From contig NC_068981.1 of NCBI RefSeq assembly GCF_001194135.2, positions 113,461,238-113,525,237 of the forward strand: 64,000 bases of DNA. The letters run 5' to 3'. This stretch comes from Octopus bimaculoides (lineage: Eukaryota). The notes under the pieces are model-generated. The model was given only the letters and a program-made list of their open reading frames with translations. It was not told the DNA's origin and did no database searches. Within the stretch, counting starts at the first letter, position 1, and each line of letters begins with the position of its first letter. Position numbers and translations under genes: made by a program. Shown here piece after piece: positions 3,091 through 48,207 of this stretch.

Positions 3091-4134
3091 AAGAATATAT
3101 GCACACACGACAGTGGGAGACAGACAGACTGACAGGCGAGTTAAAAAAATTGCACAGGAGGGTGACAAAGAAGCAATGGGTAAAAAATCACATAGAAGTG
3201 GTTTTGGCGGTGGCAGCGGGATAAGATGTGTGCTTTGGCGCTGGCTGGTGCTGCTTGTTCGAATTGTGCATCTTGCCCCAGGGAAATGAGTGAAATTGCA
3301 GTTACTGCGTATGCATAGTGTCTGGCATATTTTTGGGGTTCATGTGTTCATAAATTTGACTTTATTTACTGTTGGCAGATTCATCAAGGAGTTGTGAGGT
3401 ATGCATTCAGATTGATTTGGACAGTGGGGAAGGTCAGCAGGAGAAACAACTCCATATCGGCATGTACATCTTGGAGGAAGATAAAATTTAGGCCTATACT
3501 AAAGCGGACTTTTTTGGCATCCGTGAGAGGTAGATTTCAGGGGATGGTATGAGCCACGGGATGTTGTGTGTGTGGTGCGAGAGATGTGGGACGTATGCAG
3601 ATGAGTAGGCAAGTTTTACTAAAGTTTACTGTTGAAGTGCCATGTTTGAACATATGATGAATAAAGTTGCGTGGAAGAAACTCTTGCAGTCTCATTTTCA
3701 AGAATTGAATTTACTTGGTTGAATTCGTATTTCATAAAAAAGATTACGAACATTGAAAATGACATCTTCAAACCAGCAGGCTAAAATCTATATCTATTTT
3801 CTTTCTGTCATCCAAAGTATACGAAAATAATATACCTTTTAACCTGGCCAGAAGAATCTGCACAGTTGTACCCAATTCCGAAACTCAAGAAAATCAACTT
3901 AAGAATATAAAAAGTATTACTTGAAAGACAATACCCAATCAATTTAATCAATAACTAACGACATTCGAATGAAAAAGATATTCAAAACACAAAATAATTA
4001 AAAGTAAAAGACAGCCTAAATCTTACTTACTAGCGCCGAATGACCCACCAAATATACAACCCCAAAAGTGAAACAAAAGTGTAACAGTCCTAATTGCGGA
4101 ATATATACGAACCTCATAGAAGGCTCGACACATT

Positions 4135-16442: not shown

Positions 16443-16459
16443 TTCGTGCTCTGAATCGG

Positions 16460-16830
16460 TAGCATAAATGTGAGAGGCCTCGGGTCACCTTGAAAACAAG
16501 GTCACCTCTTAAACGACCTGAGATCTTGAGGTCTTACAATGTGGATGTAGTAGCCATTAGCGAAACTACACTCTCCGATCCGCGGGAACGTGCAGCCCTT
16601 TTCGGCGGATACGAGATTTTCTATCTCCGTGTCGGCCGGGAGCGGGTGTTGGTAGTACTGCGGTACTATTTGGGAAAGGCCTGGATTTGAAAATAAGGAC
16701 AATCTCCCTGGATCCAGAGGTTAAGTTGGTGGTCCTGGATGTGGACGGTAGTGACGGTGGTGCCTTCAGACTGCTGGCAGCCTACGCCCCGACAGGAGCA
16801 AGGCAGTCGGACTATTTCAAGCGTTCTTGT
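16460..16830 (+). mobile_element. Tx1-like LINE APE endonuclease N-terminal fragment
   Basis: INVRGLGS..KQGHLLNDLRS..DVVAISET...SLDPEVKLVVLDV parallels 33904-34197 and 41700-42000. Confidence 0.75.
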
Positions 16831-26997: not shown

Positions 26998-27055
26998 ATC
27001 ATGCTGGTGAGAGGAAAAGAATTTTATATTCTAATCACGAAACGTCGTACATGAT
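26998..27055 (+). ncRNA. Inverted sister copy of the HHR with core mutation CTGGTGA and a stem II mismatch
   Basis: ATCATG-CTGGTGA-GAG...CAC-GAAACGTCGTA-CATGAT. Confidence 0.7.
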
Positions 27056-29577: not shown

Positions 29578-30702
29578 AAGAGTGGGTATGTAAGAGAAAG
29601 AGGGACTGAACACTGAACTAACATGCTGAAGTAACATAGTGAAAGAACACAAATTTAGCCTTTTTGTGATGGTAATGAGGTGATAGTAAATAGTATGAGC
29701 TGTAGTTGTGATAGAGGCGGCGGTGATGGTGGTGTTTGTGGTGGTGAGGGGTAAAGTGAGAATAATCGATATGAAAGACAGCAGTGATGGTGATAGAAGG
29801 GAAGGCGGCCAAGTCAAAGGTATTGATGGCGGTGGCGATAGAAATCTGAATGGTGTGTGTATGGCAGACGTGGTGGCGATGGTGGTGGTACTGTTGTTTA
29901 TCATGCAGGTTTGCAATAAGTTCAAAGTTGATAAATTATATCATTATTTTGATGAAAATTGTTCATTGCTTGAAAAATTTTGTTGAAGTTTAATAAAATT
30001 TGATATGTACTCAATGCATGAAGGGTTATTGTTGGGCCCAAGGCCTAATGAAGAGCCCTCCAAAGGAGCTATCTTAAAAGTCACCCGATAGGGCGGCTTT
30101 TAAGCTAGTTCAGTCATAAATACAAATTTAAATGATATTCTTCGATTGAATTTGAAGTAACATAACGTATANNNNNNNNNNNNNNNNNNNNNNNNNNNNN
30201 NNNNNNNNNNNNNNNNNNNNNNNNNNNNNNNNNNNNNNNNNNNNNNNNNNNNNNNNNNNNNNNNNNNNNNNNNNNNNNNNNNNNNNNNNNTAACAGAATA
30301 AAAGAATATGCATACACACACAAAAACAGACATATCCATTATCCTTAAGCTTTCTATTTCTGAGAGGGCTGTAGTGATGCTGTTGTGACATATAGCGAGT
30401 TTGGGGCATTTAAACCTAGAGGAAACCATCCCTCTCCAGGTCTAAACACGACTTATTCTTTCCAGCGAGAAAGAGGGAAAGAGAATATGAATTGGACTAC
30501 AGCATTTAACACACACTCAGTCCCTTTCTCTTTCTGTATATATGTATAAAGTGATGGTATGCTGTCAACTTAATGTGACAGTCCCATGAAAGGGAAGAAT
30601 GATACTGCTATTTAACCCTAGGAAACACCGTTTCCTGTTGGCCATGACATTTTCTGTGTCCTTATGTTTTCAAAGGGAGTGATAAGCACCTCTACCCAGC
30701 AA

Positions 30703-30765
30703 AGCCAGCATCCAGAGACTAGTTTCAGAGTCATTGCTCATTATCAGTCTGGAGTAGCATGGCTT
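30703..30765 (-). ncRNA. Type I HHR motif downstream of Tx1-like copy A
   Basis: TCCAGA-CTGATAA-T-GAG caatga CTC-T-GAAA-CTAG-TC|TCTGGA; stem I extends (AGCCA/TGGCT); G8 changed to A. Confidence 0.7.
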
Positions 30766-30775
30766 GCTAGCTGAA

Positions 30776-33700
30776 TTTTTTTTATTGGGGCAATAAATGT
30801 CACACATAGATGGTACGATACAGGACAATACAAAAAAAAAATGTTATGAGATCGAATGATGCTTTGTTTTTTTTTAAATTTTAATGAAATAATTAGATTT
30901 AATTTATAGTCTTTTTCCTTTTGGGAAGGGGATTATGCCCGGTTGCATCAAAGGCCCAGCGACGACCCCTTTCCTTTTTTCTTCCAATGCAAATCAAGTA
31001 GGGTTACTTTCACCCACCTTTCTTAACACAGCCTTCCATCTTTCCTCAAACACACTTCGCGACAGGATCATCTTCTCCAGCCCTATCTTGCTCTTCAGAT
31101 GATATCTGAAGAATTGTAGCAAACCAGGGCCAGAGATGAAGGATCCCGTCACGAGTCCTTGCATTCTAGTTTTCCACACACATTCTTTCAGTACAGCAAC
31201 TGTACAGAAAAAACATACCTCACCTTTCTTTGAGAGTTCAGTGGGCGTTACAATCTTTATTATAGATTCAGCCGATAGCTGTACTCTTCCTAATGCGACA
31301 ACACGTGATCGACGTAAATCATCAAGCCTAACAACTCCCGACAATGTACAAAGGCGTGCTGGACAGTTTCATCGTCCAGCCCATATCTTGGACATATCGT
31401 TGGCACTGACATTCCGTGCCTGGATAACTTATCTCGAACAAGTAAAACATTCCTGTAACACTGCCAGGTCAGGGATTTTTGGTAATTATCCAAATACCCT
31501 GGCCCGAAAGTATTTTCGAACAGGTTGGTAAGTTGGTCCTCATCAAACCCCAGAGCTTCTCCTAGAGCGTCATCGTTTTTATGCTCTCCCATCTCTCTAT
31601 ATAAAACCGAGGTGGTGTTCCCACTACCGACCTTGCCCGTCTTGTGGATAAGCACGAGTTCCTGTTGACATTCCTTTTGCTATTCAGTCAGATTACGTCT
31701 TTTAATGAAACCGGGTTTAAATCGCTCCAAAGAAGCTGGTCGCAGAAGGAGTTCCTCTGCCAGCGGATTCCACACCTTATCACCTTCTAGGTAAGGTCAG
31801 AAATGCCTCAACCTCAACGCATGTCTGTGCATCATTAGCCAGGGCATCCCCAACCCACCCTTTAGCGGTTCCTGGCAGCAAACGGAGTGCCTCACAAGTG
31901 GCTTTCCACAAAAAGCGGAAAAGGAGGCGTTCCAACTTGTTTAACCACGAATCGAGGCAAGGGACAACGGTCAGGTGGTAGGTGATTACAGATGCAATAA
32001 ACATCTGTACCACCTCCGCCCTTCCTTTCAAGAACAGAGCCCTTCCAGACCAAGTCCGTAGAGCCTCTACCTTGTCTGCCACTCGCTCCAATTCTTCGTC
32101 CAGTCCAAATCAAACTCCAAGCAACTTAAAAGGATCATCTGTCCAGTGACCCACGACACTGGACGATATCGACTTGCTCCTCCAAGTGTCGAGGCGCAAG
32201 CCAATGGACTTGTCCCTTTTGTCCCTGCCACTGCTCCGTATCCTTTGATTGCATCTTCTACACAAGGTAGCTGCGCTTCATTGGACACGATGAAGGTGAC
32301 GTCATCCGCATAAGCAGAGACCGACTTACCGCATCCAATTTCATTAGGGTTACCTCCTAACTTCTCCAGCTTCCACAGCAATGGCTCAAGAGCCAACACA
32401 TACATGGCGGAGATCCACTTACGGAAATCCGAGCCCATCCCAGGCACTTCGAAGACCGCCGTCAGGTACTGGTGGTCTACCCTATCAAACGCTTTATTTT
32501 GGTTTAAATGGACCATGGCCTCACCTATGCCGGTTAATTTACCCACCCTGTCTAAGGTGTAGCGGATAAGGTGAAGATTGTCCTAGATTGACCTGCCTGG
32601 GATGGCGCATGTCTGCGTCCTCCCTACAAGTTTCTCCACGACACACGTCAACGTTTTAGCTAACACCTTGGCCAAAATCTTTAACTCTACATTAAATAGA
32701 GTTATGGGCCTGTAATTAATATTATCCCCCTTGCTCGGAACCTTCTGGATCAGCGTCACTGCTCCCCGACTCACAGAGCTGGGAATCCTCCCATTCTGTT
32801 GCCAGTTTGTGTAGACGCTAGCCAGCAGAGCCCTGAACAAGTTCGGCATACTACGATAAAACTCATAGGGTAGACTATCCAGCCCAGGTGAATTGTCCCC
32901 GGCGCACTCGGCCAACACCTCTTTTACCTCCGCAGGAGTGATCGGTCATTCACAGCATTCCGCCTCCCGTGCCGAGAGTCGCGGTCCACCGGCTAGAAAG
33001 TCCTTTAACGGCTCCACATGCCCAAGCGTTCCGCTCTCCCCGAACAACTGAGCGAAACGCCGATGAAAGGTCTTTTGCATAATTTCCTGTCCATAGATCT
33101 TGTGCCCCTGTTCGTCAGTTAAAGACTTTATAGAGGCTTTTTGCCCTTCTGACTCTCCACACGACTTGCCCATTCGGTAGTGTTAACACCTTCTTGCCCC
33201 ACTGCACGTAACTTAGCTCTAACTCTGCTGCCTTCGCGTTTGGCTTTGAGGAGTCCATGGCCTCGCCTAAATTATTAAGTAACTCCCCTTCTATCCTAGA
33301 TCTATCTAAACTTAGTTGATTGCTAAATCTAATAGACTCTAAACGAATGGCTCTCCTTAGGGCGTGCCACCATCTATTATTAATGATAGCACCACATAGT
33401 GCCCCCTGTACTAACTCTTTAATCCGGGCACGGAAGTCTTTACAAATCAAAATAGGCTTGTTCATCTTCCAGTACCCGGGTCCCTGTCTATGACATTTAC
33501 CTACGCGTTCCTCACACGTCACAAATTTGTGGTCCGTGTAAGGTACAACAAAAAATCGTGAACAGCTAAAAGTATCCCTATCTCTTTCCCTAACGAATAC
33601 TTTATCTATGTAAGATCTGCGTGAGCCGTCGTTATTACTCCATGTCTACTGTGGAACGCTCGGCTCATCTGGTCTGTAACGGTCTACTAGATTATAGCTC

Positions 33701-34360
33701 TCTAATAGACCCTTAAGTCCAGGATTTCCTTTCTTATCAGTCGAGCCAACACTATCCACTCATGCATCAAGGATAGTGATAAAGTCTCCTAACAGAACAA
33801 CCGTTTTTGACGTCACTAGAAAGTGTTCTAGGTTTCGAAAAAAAACCAGACTGCCCTCGCTCGTTAGGATCGCAGACAGCTACCAGCCTGTAAGACTGTT
33901 TACTCACGTGGGTTGCATCCAGGACAACCAGCCTACCTTCTGGGTCCAGAAATCAGTACTTATTGTAAGTCCAAGTTCTTCCAGAATAAGATCACCAAGC
34001 CCCACTCCTTGTCTGCTAGGAGCGATAAATTTCTCATAGCCATTCAAGAGAGGCGAGAACACTTGTGGTTCACTCATCTTGGACTCAGTTACAATGCACA
34101 CATCTATATCATGTGACCTGAGGTCGTCCAGGAAACAAGTTTGTTTCCATTTCGACCCCAGACCATGCACATTCATGCACCCTAACTTAATCGACATGAT
34201 AAAAAAAAATTTTAAGGAGTACTTTCAGTTTAAGTTGGGGTAGGGGTTGCACAAGTTTTTCTCCCCCACATCTTTCTCTTTGCTTGGTGTAGCAGCTGGG
34301 CTTTCTCTAGGTGTGGTAGCCGGGCTTACAGTTAGCTTCCCCTTCCGCCACCTCGGAGCT
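30776..34360 (-). mobile_element. Tx1/L1-clade LINE copy A: end of ORF1 region, decayed ORF2 (APE-RT-Cys domain), 3' UTR, AATAAA/A-run
   Basis: MSIKLGCMNVHGL, SPGLDSLPYEFY, YRPITLFNVELKILAK, AFDRVDH, SAYADDVT and CPRYGLDDETVQHAFVHC; stop at 30994. Confidence 0.9.
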
Positions 34361-34363
34361 GAC

Positions 34364-35883
34364 GTATTCGTACATGTCAAAATTCTTTATTTATTTAATT
34401 TCTAATGAACATAAATGGGATATACCAATACTATATTTGCATACACATACACAAACTAAGAATATGTAAAAGAAACTAATAAATTATAGTAACTAATGAA
34501 TTTATATACAAATGTAAATATTTAGAGGTGAAAAAAGTATTCGTACAGAACATAAATAACTGATAATTCTGATTTAATACTTCGTAGCATAACCATTATT
34601 CAGTTCCACTTCAACCAATCTCTTCTTGTAGTTCTTAATCAATGACTCGCATGTTTCTTTAGGAATTTTTTCCCATTCTTCTTGACAAATTTTCTTCAAA
34701 TATGGAATGCACATTGGGGCTCTTGAATGAGTTTTAATTTTCAAATAACGCCACAAATTTTCAATGGGGTTCAAGTCGGGTGACTGGCTTGGCCATTCTA
34801 ATAATTTTATATTGTGATTGACAATCAATATTTGGTAGGCTTCGCCGTGTGCTTAGGGTCGTTATCCTGTTGTAAAACCCACCCTTCACAAAGCTGGAGC
34901 TTTTCTACAGAGTCCCATAAATTATTGTTCAAATTATTTTGGTACATCTCTGCATTCATTTTACCATCTATCACATGTAAATTGCCAGTGCCATTTGCAG
35001 AGAAACACTCCTACACAATTATGTTGCCACCTCCAAACTTTACAGTAGGAATTGTGTTTTTCGTCGAATAGGCGGTACCATCATTCCTCCAAACATGGCT
35101 ACGCGAATTTCGTCCAAACAATTCAATTTTCGACTCGTCTGTCCAAAGAACATTTTACCAGAATGTATCAGATTTATCTTTATGTTCATAAACAAATTTT
35201 AAACGGACATCTCTATGCCTTTTAGTAAACAGTGGAGTTTTTATAGGAGAGCATGACTTCAGTTCATTCTTATGAAGTTCATTGCTGATTATTCATAGTG
35301 TGACACTAGACCCTGAAGCTAACAAATCTTCTTGCAGCTCCTTTCTGGTGATCATTGCGTTTATTTTTGATACTTCACTTCATTTTTCTTAAAGATCTAG
35401 GGGAAATCATGCGTGGTGCACTGGATTTTATTCTGTTTTCAACAATTGCCGATTTTTTATATCTTTGAATAAATGAAGATATAGTAGAAAATGGAATACA
35501 AAGGGTCTCTGATATTTTCCTGTAACTTTTACCGGCTTTCCACTGTTCAACAATTAAGTTTTTCACTGAATTTGTGAGTTCTTTACTTTTCGCCATTATT
35601 AGGACACTACTTTATGTTGTCTCAGTGCTGAATGAAGAAGATAGCATTTTGACACTTAAAAATGACTACTGATAAGATTATTGGAACAAACAAGAAAGTT
35701 CTAGTTAAAAAAAAAATTTAACAGTAACTCATAAATATTTATAATTGTATATAGATTCATTAGTTACTATAATTTATTAGTTTCTTTTGCCTATTCTTAG
35801 TTTATGCATGTGTATGCAAATATAATATTGGTATATCCCATTTATATTCATTAGAAATTAAATAAATGAAGAATTTTGACATG
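34364..35883 (-). mobile_element. Tc1-family DNA transposon with long (about 190-200 bp) IR/DR-type TIRs and decayed DD34E transposase
   Basis: MAKSKEL...GKSYRKIS HTH (35375-35596), [20 protein letters not shown] and [15 protein letters not shown] (34574-34828). 34364-34530 is inverted at about 35715-35883; inner repeat gtattcgtaca at about 34537. Confidence 0.92.
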
Positions 35884-36507
35884 NNNNNNNNNNNNNNNNN
35901 NNNNNNNNNNNNNNNNNNNNNNNNNNNNNNNNNNNNNNNNNNNNNNNNNNNNNNNNNNNNNNNNNNNNNNNNNNNNNNNNNNNNNNNNNNNNNNNNNNNN
36001 NNNNNNNNNNNNNNNNNNNNNNNNNNNNNNNNNNNNNNNNNNNNNNNNNNNNNNNNNNNNNNNNNNNNNNNNNNNNNNNNNNNNNNNNNNNNNNNNNNNN
36101 NNNNNNNNNNNNNNNNNNNNNNNNNNNNNNNNNNNNNNNNNNNNNNNNNNNNNNNNNNNNNNNNNNNNNNNNNNNNNNNNNNNNNNNNNNNNNNNNNNNN
36201 NNNNNNNNNNNNNNNNNNNNNNNNNNNNNNNNNNNNNNNNNNNNNNNNNNNNNNNNNNNNNNNNNNNNNNNNNNNNNNNNNNNNNNNNATATATATATCC
36301 AAATTAAGCAGCCATACATGTAGTAATCGAATCAAACTCAAAGTTGTTTTAGCCCATTGCAAACACGTTGAACCTAGTGTTGGTTGTTAGGGTGACTTCA
36401 TATAAAAAGTTTGGAAATTCAATTTACGTTACGTAGGAAAAATAAAACAAAATATTCTCGGTAATCTAATTAATTTCGTTATTTGAAACTACAGATTATT
36501 AGCTTAC

Positions 36508-36627: not shown

Positions 36628-37061
36628 CTGCGAAAAATGAAAATATATAAATCCACTATTAAACAATATCATTATTTAGCATATATTTCGCAGTTCTTTT
36701 GCATCATCATCATCGTTATCACCCTTTTGATAATAATTCCGTCATACTAAAGTCATAAGCGAAATTACTAGCAAGTAGTGAAATCCATACAAACAATATA
36801 ATTATGTATATGTAATAAAATTCTAACGATACAACAATACACACATGCAAAAAAAAAAATCAAATATTAGTATACAGAAAAAGTACATGGACTATTTTGG
36901 AAAGTAAACGTTTGCTCAGTGTACGATTTTTTCAGATAAATAAATGAAAAATAACATTACGATAATTTTCTACTGATTTGCAATTTGACACAGATGTAGA
37001 TAATGGAGCTAAACTCACACACGCGAGCGCGCACATACACATACATACATGCATGCATGCA

Positions 37062-37095
<34 letters not shown>

Positions 37096-37104
37096 CATAC
37101 ATAC

Positions 37105-37665
37105 AAGACACTATAATGAAATCCGTCGAAAGGATAACTCGGAGAACAAAGAAATAAAGACCCACAATATGGTAGAAGTCATAGCCACTCATAATAAAAA
37201 GGAGTACTGGTGGAATGTCCCAGTGAAGACCTCAATAAAATGTATGCACAACAGACCTGATATAATGATTCGGTATAGAGAAGAAAACCTGTGTACAGTT
37301 GTGGAAATTAGCTGTCCAGCGGATGTTAACATAAAGCTGAAGATCAGTGAAAAAGAGAATACCTACGCTGAACTATTGAGAAATCTGCAGTTACTCTATC
37401 CAGATTACAAGTTCAGGTTTATACCTGTAATTAATGGGGCCCTGTGATATGTAACACACTGCCTACATAACTATCTTGAGAAATTTGGCTCCTGAAAACC
37501 AAATGTAGAAAGCTAATTCGAAGACTGCAGATACAAACCATCACTGCAACTGTAAAGATCTGTAAAACTTTTCAGAGGTTTATCATTCAAATATATATGA
37601 GCATGTCTAAATATGCAACTATATGCATGAGAATACATACATAAAACAAAACATACGAATCTACA
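37105..37665 (+). mobile_element. RLE-type non-LTR retrotransposon 3' end embedded in (CATA)n
   Basis: EYWWNVPVK...NRPDIMI...VEISCPAD..K.SEKENTY RLE motif (ORF 37049-37447); (CATA)n on both sides. Confidence 0.8.
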
Positions 37666-37742
37666 CATGTACATACATACATACATACATACATGCACAC
37701 ATGCACACATGCACACATGCATACATGCACACATACAGACAT

Positions 37743-37978
37743 TAATGCGGCGAGCTGGCAGAAACGTTAGCACACCGGGCGAAATGCTTAGCGGTATTTC
37801 GTCTGCCGCTACGTTCTGAGTTCAAATTCCGCCGAGGTCGATTTTGCCTTTCATCCTTTCGGGGTCGATTAAATAAGTACCAGTTACGCACTGGGGTCGA
37901 TATAATCGACTTAATCCGTTTGTCTGTCCTTGTTTGTCCCCTCTGTGTGTAGCCCCTTGTGGGTAGTAAAGAAATAAC
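37743..37978 (+). mobile_element. tRNA-derived SINE with Nin/Deu-type central domain
   Basis: A/B-box-like gagctggcagaa...gagttcaaattcc followed by gcctttcatcctttcggggtcgattaaataagtaccagt. Confidence 0.8.
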
Positions 37979-38139: not shown

Positions 38140-38930
38140 CATGCATGCATATAGTAGTAGGCATTTGTCGGTCTCGAGAGACCACGGATCTGCGCCCGAA
38201 GAAATCATGTCAGCTGCTGATGGTGGTGCAGCATCTGTTGTGGCTGTACAGGCCCACAAGGGAGTGACAGTCACGCATACAGCGACTGCATTTGAAGGAG
38301 CCTTTTGCCGGCGCTACTGGTTTTTCCTCCCATTGAGTGCGCTTTTCTTTGGTGGCGAGTTCCTGTTTTTCTTCCGCTTTTCTTGGTGGCGAGTTCCTGT
38401 TATACTACCATATTGTGGGTTCTTATTTCTTTCACAGTATTTGTCTCCAGTGTAGGCGATCATTTGCAACCTCCTCCCATCTCAGGACATCCAGATCAAG
38501 CGACTTCATATCTCTCTTACAGACATCTTTGAAATAATGATGAGGTCGTCCTCGTGCTCTTGTGCCGGCCGCCAACTTCCATAAAGGAGGTCTTTTGGGT
38601 CCTTCCGTCCGGCATGCGATGTACATGACTGAGCCAGCGCAAACGACGCTGCTGGAGCAGGGTGAGTATCCTGGTGCACTCCGGATTTTGCTTTCAGCCT
38701 CGGCAGACCAAGCAGTTTGCCGCTTGATCTGGTGTGGAGGTAAGCACCATCAGTTGATGTCCCAAATGCATGTTTCAGTATAATTGCAAAGAAGATGCCA
38801 AATAGGCTGGGAGCAAGCACACAGCCCTGTTTCACGCCCCTACGTATGTTGAAGGCCTCCGAGAAAGAGCCATCAGATTGAACGATGCCTTTCATGTCCG
38901 CGTGAAATGATTGGACAAATGGTGGTGCGC
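38140..38930 (-). mobile_element. RTE (BovB-like) LINE RT-to-3' fragment with internal deletion
   Basis: GSFSEAFNIRRGVKQGCVLAPSLFGIFF (38506-38895) and LWKLAAGTRARGRPHHYFKDVCKRDMK (38432-38626). Confidence 0.8.
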
Positions 38931-38939
38931 CCTGAAACG

Positions 38940-40310
38940 AGCTATTCGATTAGAGTCTCTTACATTTAGTAAAGTGCTAAGTTTAGAGGGGACTAGAATA
39001 CAAAGGTAGTTAACTAAGGAATTAGAGGAGACCATAGCATCAGGTTCGGCATCAAGAGTGTTGGCGGCGAGAACGGTATTATTTCGTCACCTCAAAGCCA
39101 AACACGAAGAGTGTAGAGTCAGGGCTAAGTTACGCGCGGTGGGCAGAGAAGGTATTAACGTTGCCGGATGGACCCGTGGTGTGGAGAGTCGGAGTGGCAG
39201 ACAAGCCTCTGTACAGTCTTTAATTGACGAAAAGGGGCGTGTGATCGAAGAACAGGAGATGCAGAAGGCCTTTCATCAGCATTTCACCCGTTGTTTGGGA
39301 CGAGTGAGGAGTTGAACCACGGGAGCCCTTAAGGGATTTCCTGGCCGACGAGCAGCGATTCTCGGCGCGTGAGGCGAAGAGCTGTGAAGGGCCGATCACA
39401 GCTGCGGAGGTCGAAGAGGTGCTGGCCGAATGCGTTCGGGACAAGTCGCCAGGACTGGATGGTCTGCCCTACGAGTAGTATGCCGGACTTGTTCGGACAC
39501 TTGCTGGCTTGCGTCTACACGAACTGGCAACAGAATGGGAGAATTCCAAGCTCTGTGAGTCGGGGAGTGGTAATACTGGTCAGAAAAAACCCGAGCAAGG
39601 GGGATCATATTAGTAATTTCAGGCCCATAACTCTACTAAATGTAGAGTTAAAGATTTTGACCAAGGTGTTAACAAAAAGCTTGACGGTTGTCGCGGAGAA
39701 ACTTGTCGGAAAGGCGCAAAATTCTGCCATCTCTGGCAGGTCGATCCAGGACAATCTTCATCTATTACGCAACACCTTAGACAGGGTGGGTAAAGTATCC
39801 GGTAAAGGTGAAGCTCTGGTCCATTTAGACCAAAGCAAAGCTTTCGATAGGGTTGACCATCGGTACCTGGCGGCAGTCCTTGAGGGAGCTGGGCCCAGAC
39901 TTCCGCGGTAGGATCAAGGCCATTTATGGTGGCATCAAATCCACAGTGCATCTGAACGGTTACCTGCCGGAGCCGTTCGAGACCAAGCGTTCAGTTCGTC
40001 AAGGGTGCCCCCTATCAAGTTGGTTTGCGGCTTAGCACCTGGAGCAGCAAGCCGATAACGTTCAGTATCGTAGGGCACTGGACGGATGGTCCTGTTAAGT
40101 TGCTCGAAGTTTGGTTTGGTCCGGACTCCCAGACGGAGAAGAATTAGAGTGAGGTGACGGACAGAGTAGAAGCGCTAACCTGGACCTGGTCCGGAAGAGC
40201 TCTGTCCCTGAAAGTGAGGGCGGAGGTGGTGCAGACGTTTATTGCGTCTGTTATCATTTACCGTCTGACCGTTGTCCCTTGCCCCGATTCGTGGCTATGC
40301 AAGACGACAT
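38940..40310 (+). mobile_element. Tx1-like ORF2 internal fragment with deletions
   Basis: NFRPITLLNVELKIL..QSKAFDRVDH; near-duplicate of parts of 42450-43590. Confidence 0.85.
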
Positions 40311-40419
40311 GGCGACAAGGCTGGACTTCCTTCTCTGCGAGATGGATTTCCCACTGGTACAGGAAGAAAACCAACAAGTCAACCAAGAAGAAGCGAAGAA
40401 AAAAAATATTTTAAGCCGC

Positions 40420-43400
40420 CGTAGGTGGAAAGTTTTGTGAAATTTAAATATCTAAGGAGCAGTTGTTCAAATACAGGACTATGATTAAAAAGTGTGGCAA
40501 CGAGACGAAACTGTTGCCACCTAAAGAGATAATTCAAAATTTGGCGGAAAAAACTGTTGTATATAAAATATACAACAGGAAAGATAAGCAGATCATGCCC
40601 ATGAAAAACGATATTGTTGAGAAACGCCTCGCCCCCATATAGAGAAAAATAAAATATGTTGGGCGTGGTCCAAGAAATGCGACGGTGGAGGTGCAGTTTG
40701 AGAATGCAGACATTGCCAAAGAAATTTCAACTCAAACTCTCAAGACGGACCAAATAATGTTACTACCAAAATTATAATAGAGAAGATTATGGCCGGGTAC
40801 GATGTCAATTGGATGGCGGCAGCAGTAATATACGACACAGAGGAGGAGATAAATATTTTAAGCATGAAGAAGAGAGAGGCAGTGAATTGGAAAGGTCAGA
40901 CGCTAGAACTATTAGTACAAGCTTCTAACGAAACGCTAGAAGCAAAGCCCGACAGAATATTCATAGGGGAGGGAATCAGCGCAAGAGTGTCGGTGGAGGG
41001 GCGTCGATCCAGATGCTTCAAATGTGGAGAAAAGGTTCACGTCCGCTCCGAGTGTGAAAAGGTAAAGAAACCGGCACAAAAAAGAACTGAAGTCCCTCCC
41101 CGACAAGAGAAAGACCAACTGGAGAAAGACCAACGGAAGAAGAACAACAAAGAAAAAGAAGAAGAAAAAGTAGAGAAATCACAAGATAAAGAAAATATGG
41201 AAGGAGAAGAAATGGAATTTGCCGTTGTATCACACAAAAGGAAAAAAGCCCTCACCCCAGACTTCCCTCCCCTGACAAGAAAAAGAAAAGAAACATTACA
41301 AAACACACATACATAAAAAAATAACCCCATCCCCTTCCAAACCAAAACCCACCCCAACCCTCCCCCAAATCACACAGGGGGAAAAATAGTGTCGTACAGT
41401 ACGAAAAACACAATCTTACATGGCTTATTAAAAAGAAAAAAAATTATACAACATTGGGACCGATAGAAGGCAAACCGCCACATTTGTGGCTAGCTAGAGT
41501 GGACATGGAACACTATGAACAATTTAAACAACTATATCCAGAGGATATATTCGACGTAAGCCAGTACATAGTGAAAGAAAAAATTGTGCTGGCACCAGCG
41601 GCTACACCAGAAAAAGAAGAAACGGAAGGAGGGGACGACAAATGTCGTACAGCCCCTCCTCAAGTTTAAAATGTAAGTATGTTCAACTTTTACAATGGAA
41701 ATTAAGTTAGGGTGTGTAAATGACGTGGCCTGGGATCGAAATGGAAGCAAACCTCAGGTCACAGAAATTAGATATATGTATTGTGACTGAGTCCAAGTAG
41801 AACGGGCTACAGGTGTTCTCGCCTCTTCTAAATGACTACAAGAAATTTATTTCTCCTAGTCGGGGAGGAAGCGGGGGCGTGGTGGTGTTGTTCAGAAAAG
41901 CTTCGACGTACAGGTAAGTACAGTCTTTCTGGACCCAGAAGGTAGGTTGGTCGTCCTAGATGTGACACACGTGAGTAAGCAGTCCTTCAGGCTGGTGGCA
42001 CTCAACACTCCGCATGAGAGTAGGCAAACGGGTTTTTTTTCGAGATCTGGAGAACTTTCTAGTAACGTCTACAACTTTAGTTTTAAAAGGAGACTTCAAC
42101 ACTATTCTCGACGCGCGAGTGGGTAGTGTAGGCTCGACCAATAGAAAGGGAAACCCTGGTCTAAAAAGGCTACTAGCGAGCTATAACCTAGTAGAGCGGT
42201 ACAGACCGGATAAACCGCTCGTTCCACAGTGGACGTGGTCTAATAACGAAGGTTCACTCAGATCTTATCTAGATAGGGTAGTTATAAAAGATAGAGATAG
42301 AAACACAGTTGTCCACGCTTTTGTTGTACCTCCTACACCGATCACATTTTGACTAGTAAAGTCTTCTGTACCCGGGTTAAGGAGTTAATTCAGAGGGCAT
42401 TATGCGGAGCCATCGTAAATAATAGATGGTGGTGCGCTTTCAAGCGAGCCATTAATTCAGAGTCTCTTAGATTTAGTAAAGAGCCAAGTTTAGAGAAGAT
42501 TAGAATAGAAGGGCAATTAATTAAGGAATTAGAACCCATGGTATCCGGCTCTGCATCCAGAATACTGGCGGCGAGAACGGTATTACATCGTCACCTCAAA
42601 GCCAAACACGAAGGGTGTAGATTCAGGGCTAAGCTACGCGAAGTGGGCAGAAAAGGTATTAACGTTGCCGGATGGGCCCGTCGTGTGGAGAGTCGAAGAG
42701 GCAGACATGCCTCTGTACAGTCTTTAATTGACGAACAGGGGCGTACAATCAAAGGACAGGAGATGCAGAAGGCCTTTCATCAGCATTTCGCCCAGTTGTT
42801 TGGGACGAGCGAGGAGTTGGACAATCTTCATCTCTTACGTTACACTTTAGACAGGGTGGGTAAAGTACCCGGTAAAGGTGGCGCTCTGGTCCATTTAGAC
42901 TAAACTAAAGCTTACGATAGGGTTGACCATCGGTACCTGGCGGCAGTCCTTGAGGCGGCTGGGCGAGGCCTAGATTGCCACGGTTAGATCAAGGCCATTT
43001 ATGGTGGCATAAAACTCAGTTCAAATAAACGGTTACTTCTCGGAGCCGTTTGAGATCAAACACTCGGTTCGTCAAGGGTGCCACCTGTCTTCGCTTCTAT
43101 ATGTATTGACTCTTGAGCCATTGCTGTGGAAGTTGGAGAGTTTGGGGGCATCCCAAATGAAATCGAATGTGGTAAGAGTGTCTCTGCGTACACGGATGAC
43201 GTCACCATCATCGCGTCCAAGATGACTCAGCTACCTCGCGTAGCAGAGGCAATCAGAAGATACGAGACGGTGGCAGGGACAAAAGTTAACATGGACAAGT
43301 CCGTCAGTTTGCGGCTCGGCACCTGGAGCAGCAAGCCGATAACGTTCAGTGTCGTAGGGCACTGGACAGATGATCCTGTTAAGTTGCTCAGAGTTTGGTT

Positions 43401-44741
43401 TGGTTCGGACTCTCAGACGAAGAAGAATTGGAGTGAGGTGACGGACAGGGTAGAAGCGCTAACCCGGAATTGGTCCGGAAGAGCGCTGTCCCTGAAAGTG
43501 AGGGCGGAGGTGGTGCAGACGTTTATCGCGTCTGTTATCATCTACCGTCTGACCGTCGTCCCTTGCCCCGATTCGTGGCTATGCAAGCTGGTAAGGATTC
43601 TCTTCCGCTTTTTGTGGAGGGGAAAACCGCTTGTGAGGCGCTCCGTGTACTGTTAAGAACCGCTAAATGGTGGCTTAGGGATGCAGTGGTTAATGATGTG
43701 CAAATATGCACTGAGACTAAGGCATCTCTGGCTCTACCTGGATGGTGGTCAGGTGTGGAATTCGCTCGCAGGGGAATTCTTTCCACGATCAACCTCCTTG
43801 GAGGAATTTAAACCCGGTTTGATTAAAAGACAAAAAACGACTGAATGGCAAAAGGAATGTCGGCAGGCACTCGCGCTAATCAGCAAGGCGGGCAAGGCCG
43901 GCAGCGGGGATACCACCTCTGCATTTTATAAAGGGTTGGTAGAGTACAAAAGTGACGACGTTCGAGGAGAGACACTGGGACTCGATGAGAACCAGCTATC
44001 CAAACTGTTTCAGAACACTTTCAGGGTGGGGTATTTAGATAACTACCAAAGATCCCTGACCTGGCAGTGTTTTAGGAATGCGTTTCCTATTCACGAGAAA
44101 TTGTCCAAGCACGGATTGTCAGTACCACCGGAATGTCCAAGGTGCGGGCAGGACAAGGAAACTATCCTGCACGCTCTTGTACAGTGCACACAGCTGTCGG
44201 AGCTGACAATTTACGTAGAACACGTGTTGTCACACCTAGGGAAAGTACAGCTATCGGCTGAGTCTGTGATTAAGAGCGTACCGCCCACTGGGCTATCTAA
44301 AGAAGGTGAAGCTTGTTTTCTATGTACAGTTGCAGTAATGAAAGAGTGTGCATGGAGAACTAGAATACAAGGAATCAAGACAGGAACCTTCATCTCCGGC
44401 ACTGGAATGCTACTATATTTTAGGTATCACCTGAAAAGCAAGATAGGGCTGGAGAGAAGGCACCTGTCGAGAATCGTATATGAGAAAAGATGGAAAGGTG
44501 TGGCAAAGAAGTTAGGAATAAATGTCCCTTCTTAATCCCCCCCCCATGGTAAAAACAGGGTGTAGTCGCTGGTCAACCAGCCAAATGTCGAACAAATAAG
44601 TTATCCTTTAAAAAAACTATAATTATATATACATTTTTAAAAACGATTTTTATATAAACTCGCTGAGCACTTCTCTATGTTTGTAAGGTCCTGTACCGTC
44701 CCCTCTATGTCTCGATAATATATTTATCATAATTAAAAAAA
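40420..44741 (+). mobile_element. Tx1/L1-clade LINE copy B: ORF1 (CCHC knuckle CFKCGEKVHVRSEC), ORF2 (APE, deleted RT N-part, YTDD, CPRC Cys domain), 3' UTR, A-run
   Basis: ORFs 40789-41316, 42014-42352, 42349-42903, 43126-43656 and 43681-44535; aattaaaaaaa at 44731-44741. Confidence 0.92.
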
Positions 44742-44744
44742 CAG

Positions 44745-44803
44745 GTGATTGTCACACGCTGATGACGGGTCAATATACGGAAACTCGGGTCCGTGTGTAT
44801 CAC
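44745..44803 (+). ncRNA. Type I HHR motif downstream of Tx1-like copy B
   Basis: GTGAT..CACACG-CTGATGA-CGGGTCAATATACG-GAAA-C TCGG G-TC|CGTGTG..ATCAC; core intact, stem II short and atypical. Confidence 0.75.
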
Positions 44804-45029
44804 GTCAGGTTGAAGATGGGAAGGATGGCTTCCCTTTGCAAATACTGATAGCACACAGAAAGTGTGTCAATAGACAGCTGGAGGAGGTGTTCTCCTGGGG
44901 CTACAAGATACAGTAGCATGCACCCTTAAGGGTTAGCGACATTTAAGTGGCAAATATACTTCACGATGACGTGCAGCTACTGTTTATACCTCGTTCAGAG
45001 ATTTATATATATTAGTTTATGTATATATT

Positions 45030-45715: not shown

Positions 45716-45787
<72 letters not shown>

Positions 45788-46107
45788 ATACGTACATACA
45801 TACATAAATACACACGCATACATGTATACACACACAAACAACACAAACACACACACGCACACACACGTATTTATACACACTCATATATACATTCATATTA
45901 AGATATGCACGCTCACGCAAAACATATCAGTCTTTATTTATCAAATTTCACACACAGTACTTCGGTTGACCACAAGCTTTGGTAGTTGAAATTGTTTGGA
46001 AGTGTTACGCAGTGGAATTAAGAACCAAATGACTGCAAAAAAACTTTCTTAACCACATTGCTGTACCAGCACCAATATGGAACACAAAATTATTTGTTAT
46101 TAGTTAC

Positions 46108-46455: not shown

Positions 46456-46554
<99 letters not shown>

Positions 46555-46944
46555 GCAAATATACATACATACATACATACATACATCCACACTCAACATA
46601 CAGAAAAGTTCATTAAACCGGCCTAATCAAATATAGAGACAAGCTGTTCATGCAGAGATAGCGTCACATGCCCATTAAACGATCAATGTAACACATGAGC
46701 TATCTTTTAACACTGTAGTCAACAATTACAAGAGCTCATTTAAAATCCAGGAGAGATGTAACATCACATTAGTGTGACACATGACAATTGAAAGGAAAGG
46801 TACAATCAACTGGATAGTATTGAAAAAGTGCACTTTGTTAAGCTAAGAAAAGGTTTAATCTAAAGAATTTGTTCTACCCATGGACCCTCACTCAGTCAGT
46901 CAGTCACTCACTCACTCAGTCAGTCAGTCAGTCACTCACTCACT

Positions 46945-48159: not shown

Positions 48160-48207
48160 TCATGTCTGACGACTATTAGATCAATACGAAACTCTTCGGT
48201 AGCATGA
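48160..48207 (+). ncRNA. Type I HHR motif (solo)
   Basis: TCATGT-CTGACGA-CTATT agatc AATAC-GAAA-C TCTTCG G-TA|GCATGA; core intact, C-C mismatch at the base of stem II. Confidence 0.7.

Follow-up and report, generated by a model that had tools for sequence, protein, structure and literature searches.

A hammerhead ribozyme module behind the 3' ends of two LINE copies in the Octopus bimaculoides genome

Hammerhead ribozymes are known in animal retrozymes and in repeats that resemble short interspersed nuclear elements (SINEs) (PMC7229834, PMC4209133), and the question raised by the present locus is how a motif of this kind came to lie behind the 3' ends of a long interspersed nuclear element (LINE). 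The sequence analyzed is a stretch of 64,000 nucleotides (nt) of Octopus bimaculoides DNA (RefSeq assembly GCF_001194135.2, contig NC_068981.1, positions 113,461,238 to 113,525,237), which we call the window and in which all positions are counted from its first letter. It has a GC content of ~36%, is rich in transposable elements and includes assembly gaps and TG/TA microsatellites. One LINE family is represented in it by two decayed copies, A on the plus strand and B on the minus strand, which lie ~6-10 kb apart in opposite orientation. Each is followed by a module of ~255 nt, called H1, which lies beyond the canonical LINE end and carries a hammerhead motif. Is H1 a part of the LINE, the site into which the LINE inserts, or a later arrival at its tail? 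The features on which the answer depends are as follows, where ORF and UTR stand for open reading frame and untranslated region and RT for reverse transcriptase.

40304-41670, plus strand: 5' UTR remnant (~63 nt) and ORF1 (~40367-41670) of LINE copy A, read from the sequence
41695-44535, plus strand: ORF2 of LINE copy A (endonuclease, RT and C-terminal zinc-finger domain), from Pfam RVT_1 and zf-RVT and tblastx frames
44536-44741, plus strand: 3' UTR of copy A, from alignment to the UTR of copy B
44742-44998, plus strand: H1 module of copy A, from alignment to module B (3' edge approximate)
44753-44797, plus strand: type-I hammerhead motif of copy A, CACACG/CUGAUGA/CGGGUCAAUAUACG/GAAA/CUCGGG/UC/CGUGUG
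30994-34365, minus strand: C-terminal end of ORF1 and degraded ORF2 of LINE copy B, from sequence comparison with copy A and tblastx
30776-30993, minus strand: 3' UTR of copy B, from alignment to the UTR of copy A
30520-30775, minus strand: H1 module of copy B, from alignment to module A (3' edge approximate)
30753-30711, minus strand: type-I hammerhead motif of copy B, UCCAGA/CUGAUAA/UGAGCAAUGACUCU/GAAA/CUAG/UC/UCUGGA

An earlier note on this DNA had described the ORF2 stops (44533-44535 on the plus strand in A, 30996-30994 on the minus strand in B), homologous 3' UTRs, the A-runs that end them and the hammerheads behind, and all of its coordinates proved correct. Both 3' UTRs are ~210 nt long and align with z = 11 at 71% identity (58% counting gaps). 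The homology which the note had extended beyond the hammerheads holds in a real alignment: z is 12.7 for everything behind the A-run and 12.3 when only the part behind the hammerhead is compared, and ~200 nt downstream of the predicted cleavage site are homologous between the copies. Identity over the H1 module is 72% (58% counting gaps), the same degree as in the UTR. When the window was searched by nhmmer with a hidden Markov model of the module, just the two copies behind the LINE ends were found, and there was no solo H1 on either strand within the 64 kb; a check for hammerhead repeats without a LINE, which had been proposed, returned no H1 in the window, while three other families, H2 to H4, do occur LINE-free. 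The association of the LINE 3' end with a same-strand hammerhead module is real and not a matter of chance.

In both copies the hammerhead lies on the same strand as the LINE, and the spacer from the A-run to helix I is 11 nt in A and 22 nt in B. The core of copy A is intact, and cleavage is predicted after C44791 (between 44791 and 44792); the site predicted in copy B follows C30717 (between 30717 and 30716). A descriptor made up of the core, GAAA, UH and a helix I with 6 or more Watson-Crick pairs gave 2 matches in the window under strict settings and 3 when A was allowed at position 8, against 0.01 expected from a Markov copy. Helices I, II and III measure 6, 3-5 and 2 bp, and the last closes on a small loop that is self-complementary. 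Helix III of A, ACUCGGGU, is self-complementary if G-U is allowed, and that of B is the palindrome ACUAGU. Animal type-I hammerheads commonly combine a 6-bp helix I with a short helix II and a 1-2-bp helix III whose small loop is palindromic (PMC4209133), and the H1 motif agrees with this published metazoan description.

The hammerhead stretch itself is barely alignable between A and B (z = 1.8), so the fold was preserved through a change in sequence. Perfect pairing of stem I with different sequences in the two copies, as previously noted, was confirmed: helix I pairs 6/6 in both, and 4 of the 6 pairs are changed on both sides in a register-corrected alignment. In slid controls, where the partners were moved by 1-3 columns, 10-52% of cells were paired and no compensatory pair was seen. 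Helix III has two invariant pairs (A-U and C-G), and helix II is just 70% paired over the two copies. Four double changes have kept helix I paired, which indicates that selection acted on the hammerhead fold after the modules of A and B had separated.

Where the LINE itself ends can be judged from its relatives. In copy A, the polyadenylation signal ATTAAA (44732-44737) is fused to a 7-nt A-run (44735-44741), and the UTR ends in ATTAAAAAAA at 44741; in copy B, AATAAA (30786-30781) is fused to an 8-nt A-run (30783-30776), and the UTR ends in AATAAAAAAAA at 30776. Twelve relative contigs were retrieved, and the LINE 3' end was reached only in L002 (a JGI contig), L006 (a copy of Argonauta hians) and L012 (a Logan contig), while L008, L014, L015 and L017 stop before the LINE 3' end or are interrupted. 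L006, with 47% amino acid identity, terminates in ...GGCTAATAAAAGAATTA(ATT)4 followed by unrelated DNA, L002 in CCAATAAAAGAAATC(ATT)n, and L012, with 73% nucleotide identity to A and B, in GGGAATTAAAAAAAAA, with the 5' UTR and ORF1 of another copy within 80 nt. A UTR motif, ...GTATCGTCCCCTCTATGT..., is common to these three and to A and B. No hammerhead was found after the LINE end in any of the three, and the module model detected no further H1 copy in the relatives' loci. Because all three end there without a hammerhead, the A-run is the ancestral 3' terminus of the LINE, and the H1 module therefore belongs outside the ancestral element. H1 was also considered as the 5' UTR of a following tandem copy and rejected, with z of at most 2.7 to any 5' UTR against 6.2 for a control pair.

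Are the two cases independent? Over 448 aligned codons of ORF2, the proportions of synonymous and nonsynonymous differences between A and B are pS = 0.44 and pN = 0.18, with a synonymous divergence dS of 0.66 and a nonsynonymous to synonymous ratio dN/dS of 0.32. This ratio shows that most of the divergence predates insertion and arose under purifying selection. At the borders of element and module, the homology between A and B comes to an end. The DNA outside is unrelated at the two loci: upstream are an opposite-strand RT gene (A) and the end of a Tc1-like transposon (B), and downstream an H2 repeat (A) and GA-rich DNA (B). The codon comparison and these borders show that A and B inserted independently of each other, out of lineages that had split while still active.

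The homology, the boundaries, the compensation in helix I and the independence of the insertions are observed; co-mobilisation with the LINE, acquisition in one event and a catalytic role of the module, if there is any, are what we infer. Our tentative preference, at slightly less than an even chance, is that H1 is a unit of the retrozyme type, or of the type in the pseudo-long terminal repeats (pseudo-LTRs) of Penelope-like elements, which the tail of an ancestral master LINE acquired in a single event and which has been copied with the LINE lineage since then. One hammerhead unit would have landed at the tail of the master copy, transcripts reading through the weak A(A/T)TAAA signal would have taken H1 along as a 3' extension, and both diverged subfamilies, represented by A and B, would have inherited it. 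The association in the window is one to one (2/2 LINE ends with H1, 0 solo H1), and we count both this and the equal divergence of UTR and module (71% and 72%) in favour of this course. A and B are closest to each other, and L012, alone among the outgroup copies in having a 3' flank that can be read, has no module, which fits a clade-specific acquisition. We also count in its favour the independence of the two insertions, the unrelated DNA on the outer sides of LINE and module, the preserved helix I and the agreement with the published metazoan architecture.

The earlier note had also offered a self-cleaving ribozyme that defines the 3' end of the LINE RNA. As worded, this fits poorly with the A-run terminus, the ~200 nt conserved downstream and the mutated core of copy B. 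Those ~200 nt past the cleavage site are conserved as the UTR is, so that co-mobilisation with the LINE would require an uncut template of transposition. Efficient cutting would strip them from the template and keep them from being inherited, a conflict that a weak helix III would resolve. Type-I hammerheads built in this way cleave poorly as monomers and better as dimers (PMC4209133). The weak, palindromic helix III may thus keep H1 uncut in single LINE transcripts, so that the extension survives. For cutting after GUC, one copy would have to pair with a second through the self-complementary helix III, as could happen in a tandem array or where two RNAs meet. Possible uses for the LINE would be the trimming of read-through or array transcripts, or the release of a small RNA. 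Alternatively, H1 may merely hitch-hike, as has been suggested for the hammerheads of Penelope-like elements (PMC8557442).

Several observations weigh against co-mobilisation or against a working ribozyme in it. Copy B lacks a full core, since CUGAUAA has the catalytic G8 replaced by A, which is disabling. Rfam hammerhead models gave no match at the gathering score in the whole window, a 20-kb region or the motifs alone, and none at E <= 10 on 140-160-nt pieces of both copies. The canonical monomer fold has -1.5 (A) and +1.3 (B) kcal/mol, compared with minimum free energies of -11.8 and -8.6; minimum free energy folding of monomers and dimers did not return the hammerhead fold, a result that we judge uninformative for such motifs. 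No tail or polyadenylation signal is recognisable at the module's own end. Just two copies are available, both old and decayed, and the retrieved contigs offer no further member of the A/B clade whose 3' flank could be read. No significant target-site duplication brackets LINE and module in A or B under either boundary model; the best candidate (P = 0.18) is located after the A-run, and the true 5' flank of copy B may be hidden in the assembly gap at 35884-36288. The relatives at 47-73% identity end at the A-run, and one of them, L012, may be site-specific, which would favour a targeted insertion.

On the same side stand the other hammerhead repeats of the window, where at least six further motifs form three families.

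56118-56028 and 45319-45229, minus strand: H2, hammerhead motifs with a 60-nt helix II
26352-26295 (minus strand), 26998-27053 (plus strand) and 1988-1926 (minus strand): H3, hammerhead motifs
48160-48207, plus strand: H4, hammerhead motif UCAUGU CUGACGA CUAUUAGAUCAAUAC GAAA CUCUUCGG UA GCAUGA

The H2 copies are alike over ~220 nt and have compensatory changes in helices I and II; in the 45-kb copy, U16.1 is changed to C. That the region upstream of H2 is a LINE UTR was considered and found no support, the only match being a weak one to L002 (z = 5.7). Two of the H3 copies are inverted, ~650 nt apart, in a foldback inserted into an RT gene with an FMDD motif (~25.9-27.5 kb), and one of them has its core mutated to CUGGUGA. 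Such a layout of inverted hammerhead pairs has been reported for truncated Penelope-like elements (PMC4209133). In the H3 copy at 2 kb, helix I is fully different and pairs nonetheless. The loop 2 and helix III of H4 resemble those of H1, and its flanks give no match to the H1 model. None of the three families has a LINE attached, and H3 has the same pattern as H1, with conserved flanks and a hypervariable, compensated hammerhead between them. For these reasons H1 behaves as an independent repeat family, and it looks like another representative of the hammerhead repeats that this genome contains as an independent class.

The strongest rival, which we consider rather unlikely, is that this LINE subfamily, as known Tx1-clade elements do, has a fixed insertion site, which lies 10-20 nt upstream of the hammerhead of an H1 repeat already in place, the module being the downstream half of its target. 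Insertion just upstream of a hammerhead-bearing repeat was the other proposal of the earlier note, and it gains from the canonical terminus at the A-run, from the abundance of LINE-independent hammerhead repeats in the window and from the arrays of the relatives. In several molluscs and in ENA assemblies, relatives stand in head-to-tail tandem arrays, typical of site-specific LINEs, as in L007 (period 7547), L003 and L012, and those of Patella caerulea are consecutive genes (locus tags SNE40_003393-003415); an Rfam search of the relatives' loci found no RNA gene between the arrayed units or as a target. In L012, TTAGGTAC[C/A]TCT stands on both sides of one LINE copy (334-346 and 4116-4128), directly precedes the 5' UTR of the next copy and also ends a foldback element (L012 1-350). 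This 12-mer may be a fixed insertion site like that of Tx1L in Tx1D, but the direct repeat is ambiguous, since the foldback arm seems to extend past it. Against it, no solo H1 occurs in the 64 kb, and the one 5' flank that can be read, that of copy A, consists up to the very junction of coding sequence from another retroelement, because of which a target repeat would need to begin precisely where the LINE inserted. Moreover, the spacers are unequal (11 and 22 nt), and nothing after the A-run is common to A, B, L012 and L006.

More doubtful is the reverse order of events, in which a mobile, Penelope-derived and retrozyme-like H1 with a bias to A-rich or microsatellite DNA hit two resident LINE tails independently. 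Penelope-like elements do insert with a bias to microsatellites, (TA)n among them, and many short fragments with hammerheads are left behind by them (PMC8557442, PMC4209133), and relatives of the LINE have (ATT)n tails. At a short (TA)n near 44999-45010, the far edge of module A and the minus-strand H2 repeat meet tail to tail, which could speak for the same bias. This order would need both tails to be hit and both H1 to lie at tails, in one orientation and with nearly the same start point, and there is no remnant of a tail or duplication on the upstream side of the module. A gene of the Penelope type (RT with GIY-YIG) related to H1 was not seen in the window either. Finally, a single insertion beside a hammerhead repeat, later copied by inverted segmental duplication so that the two cases are one event, would suit the ~6-10 kb spacing and the opposite orientation, but is very improbable, because it would give a dN/dS near 1 over the 448 codons and the homology ends at the element and module edges. 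Co-mobilisation, targeting and reverse insertion are all compatible with the anatomy of the two copies.

The anatomy of the LINE copies is complicated by decay and by their neighbours, of which the following two adjoin the copies.

34373-35883, minus strand: Tc1/mariner-like transposon that encodes a transposase C-terminus and has terminal inverted repeats of 152 nt, 93% complementary
38919-40303, plus strand: A2, an RT-region LINE fragment equivalent to copy B 33373-31936, from sequence comparison

ORF1 of copy A has a CCHC zinc knuckle near 41020 and matches ORF1 of L012 with an E of about 1e-29 (tblastx); its C-terminus is common to copies A and B. ORF2 of copy A, which has 78% nucleotide identity to that of copy B, is decayed by frameshifts, one in-frame stop and a deletion of ~450 nt near 42811-42820. 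The A2 fragment is fused directly to the 5' end of copy A (junction 40303/40304), and we infer that the two form a template-switch chimera, made by a reverse transcriptase that moved onto a second LINE RNA. This composite sits within another RT gene on the minus strand (38506-38925), whose continuation was sought downstream of copy A and not found. The 5' end of copy B directly adjoins the Tc1-like transposon, one arm of which enters an assembly gap; the remainder of copy B was sought on the far side of this transposon and not found. Elsewhere in the window, a more distant LINE endonuclease fragment with 40-58% amino acid identity to copy B is present at 16455-16824 (plus strand). Sub-threshold Rfam matches to microRNAs (mir-297, mir-466 and others) at 45733-45866, 37026-37743 and 46542-46607 are TG/TA microsatellites and not genes.

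As for class, ORF2 of the copies contains RVT_1 and a C-terminal zf-RVT in Pfam, and full-length relatives of ~1145-1160 amino acids add an Exo_endo_phos endonuclease. The traits of the L1 superfamily are thus present, with an APE endonuclease (in relatives), RT and zf-RVT, an upstream ORF1 and an A-rich 3' end; the traits of Penelope-like elements, namely a telomerase-like RT with GIY-YIG and pseudo-LTRs, are absent from A and B. This architecture points to the L1 superfamily and not to a Penelope-like element; the placement is made by domains, and the clade label Tx1 is that of the earlier note. The closest named proteins are hypothetical entries of Octopus bimaculoides (67% identity to both C-termini), O. 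sinensis, Argonauta hians and Patella caerulea, and a hypothetical protein of Branchiostoma is also among the named relatives. Two scans of JGI metagenome contigs for relatives of the LINE gave no match. The distance between A and B is 0.23, and distances to four of five Logan copies are 0.27-0.30; L014 is at 0.25 from B and 0.29 from A. By these distances A and B appear to be mutual closest relatives, with L014 nearly as close to B.

Among known systems, L1 3' transduction offers one comparison: read-through of a weak polyadenylation signal moves downstream DNA into new copies, and the transduced segments are usually confined to one lineage, short-lived and provided with a new poly(A) tail at their end. 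H1 would differ in having persisted across deeply diverged subfamilies, without a visible tail. Another is given by target-specific LINEs of the Tx1 clade, such as Tx1L in Tx1D, which share with the present case the L1-superfamily architecture and an adjoining repeat, as well as the arrays and the possible fixed site in a relative; here, however, the repeat is on the 3' side only, and the clade assignment by domains reaches the L1 superfamily.

Metazoan non-LTR retrozymes and type-I hammerheads (Cervera & de la Pena 2020, PMC7229834; descriptor PMC4209133) have like helix lengths (6, ~4 and 1-2 bp) and a palindromic loop, and retrozymes are likewise units of a few hundred nt with low GC and a hypervariable, compensated hammerhead. 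In contrast, H1 is known from sequence alone, has no Rfam match and is attached to an autonomous LINE on the 3' side, and its units are single: tandem repeats of 170-400 nt with a hammerhead, a trait of retrozymes, were not found, each locus holding one H1. Penelope-like elements with pseudo-LTR hammerheads (PMC4209133, PMC8557442) are also autonomous retroelements with a same-strand hammerhead near the 3' end and with tandem relatives. The present LINE differs from them in having APE, RVT_1 and zf-RVT with a separate ORF1 instead of a telomerase-like RT with GIY-YIG, and no module was detected on its 5' side, where the 5' UTRs of A and B are mostly missing. Self-cleaving motifs carried by non-LTR retrotransposons are known from LINE 5' ends, with ribozymes like that of hepatitis delta virus in R2 and others and twister in RTE (PMC7761336). 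These stay with the element RNA and process read-through transcripts, whereas H1 lies past the 3' terminus and its cutting would remove the last ~200 nt. The earlier note knew of no description of hammerheads at Tx1 3' ends, and we found no report of one that follows a LINE of the L1/Tx1 type either, the library searched being incomplete.

What would an association of this kind mean for octopods? LINEs mobilise SINEs that share their tails. It is conceivable, though we think it improbable, that an octopod lineage of the L1/Tx1 type took a retrozyme-type unit as its working 3' tail, is thereby the autonomous partner by which such tails are recognised and could mobilise solo repeats such as H2 to H4 in trans. 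If insertion into a hammerhead repeat were the true history instead, this would be a new class of target for site-specific LINEs. The autonomous mover of animal retrozymes was left in 2020 with LINEs or Penelope-like elements as candidates (PMC7229834), and a 2026 preprint favours Penelope-like elements as the movers in vertebrates. A LINE lineage with H1 at its own 3' end would be the first case of a hammerhead at the 3' end of an L1/Tx1-type element and would give a concrete link between LINEs and hammerhead repeats. If true, it would provide a LINE-based route for animal retrozymes beside, or instead of, the Penelope-based route that is now proposed.

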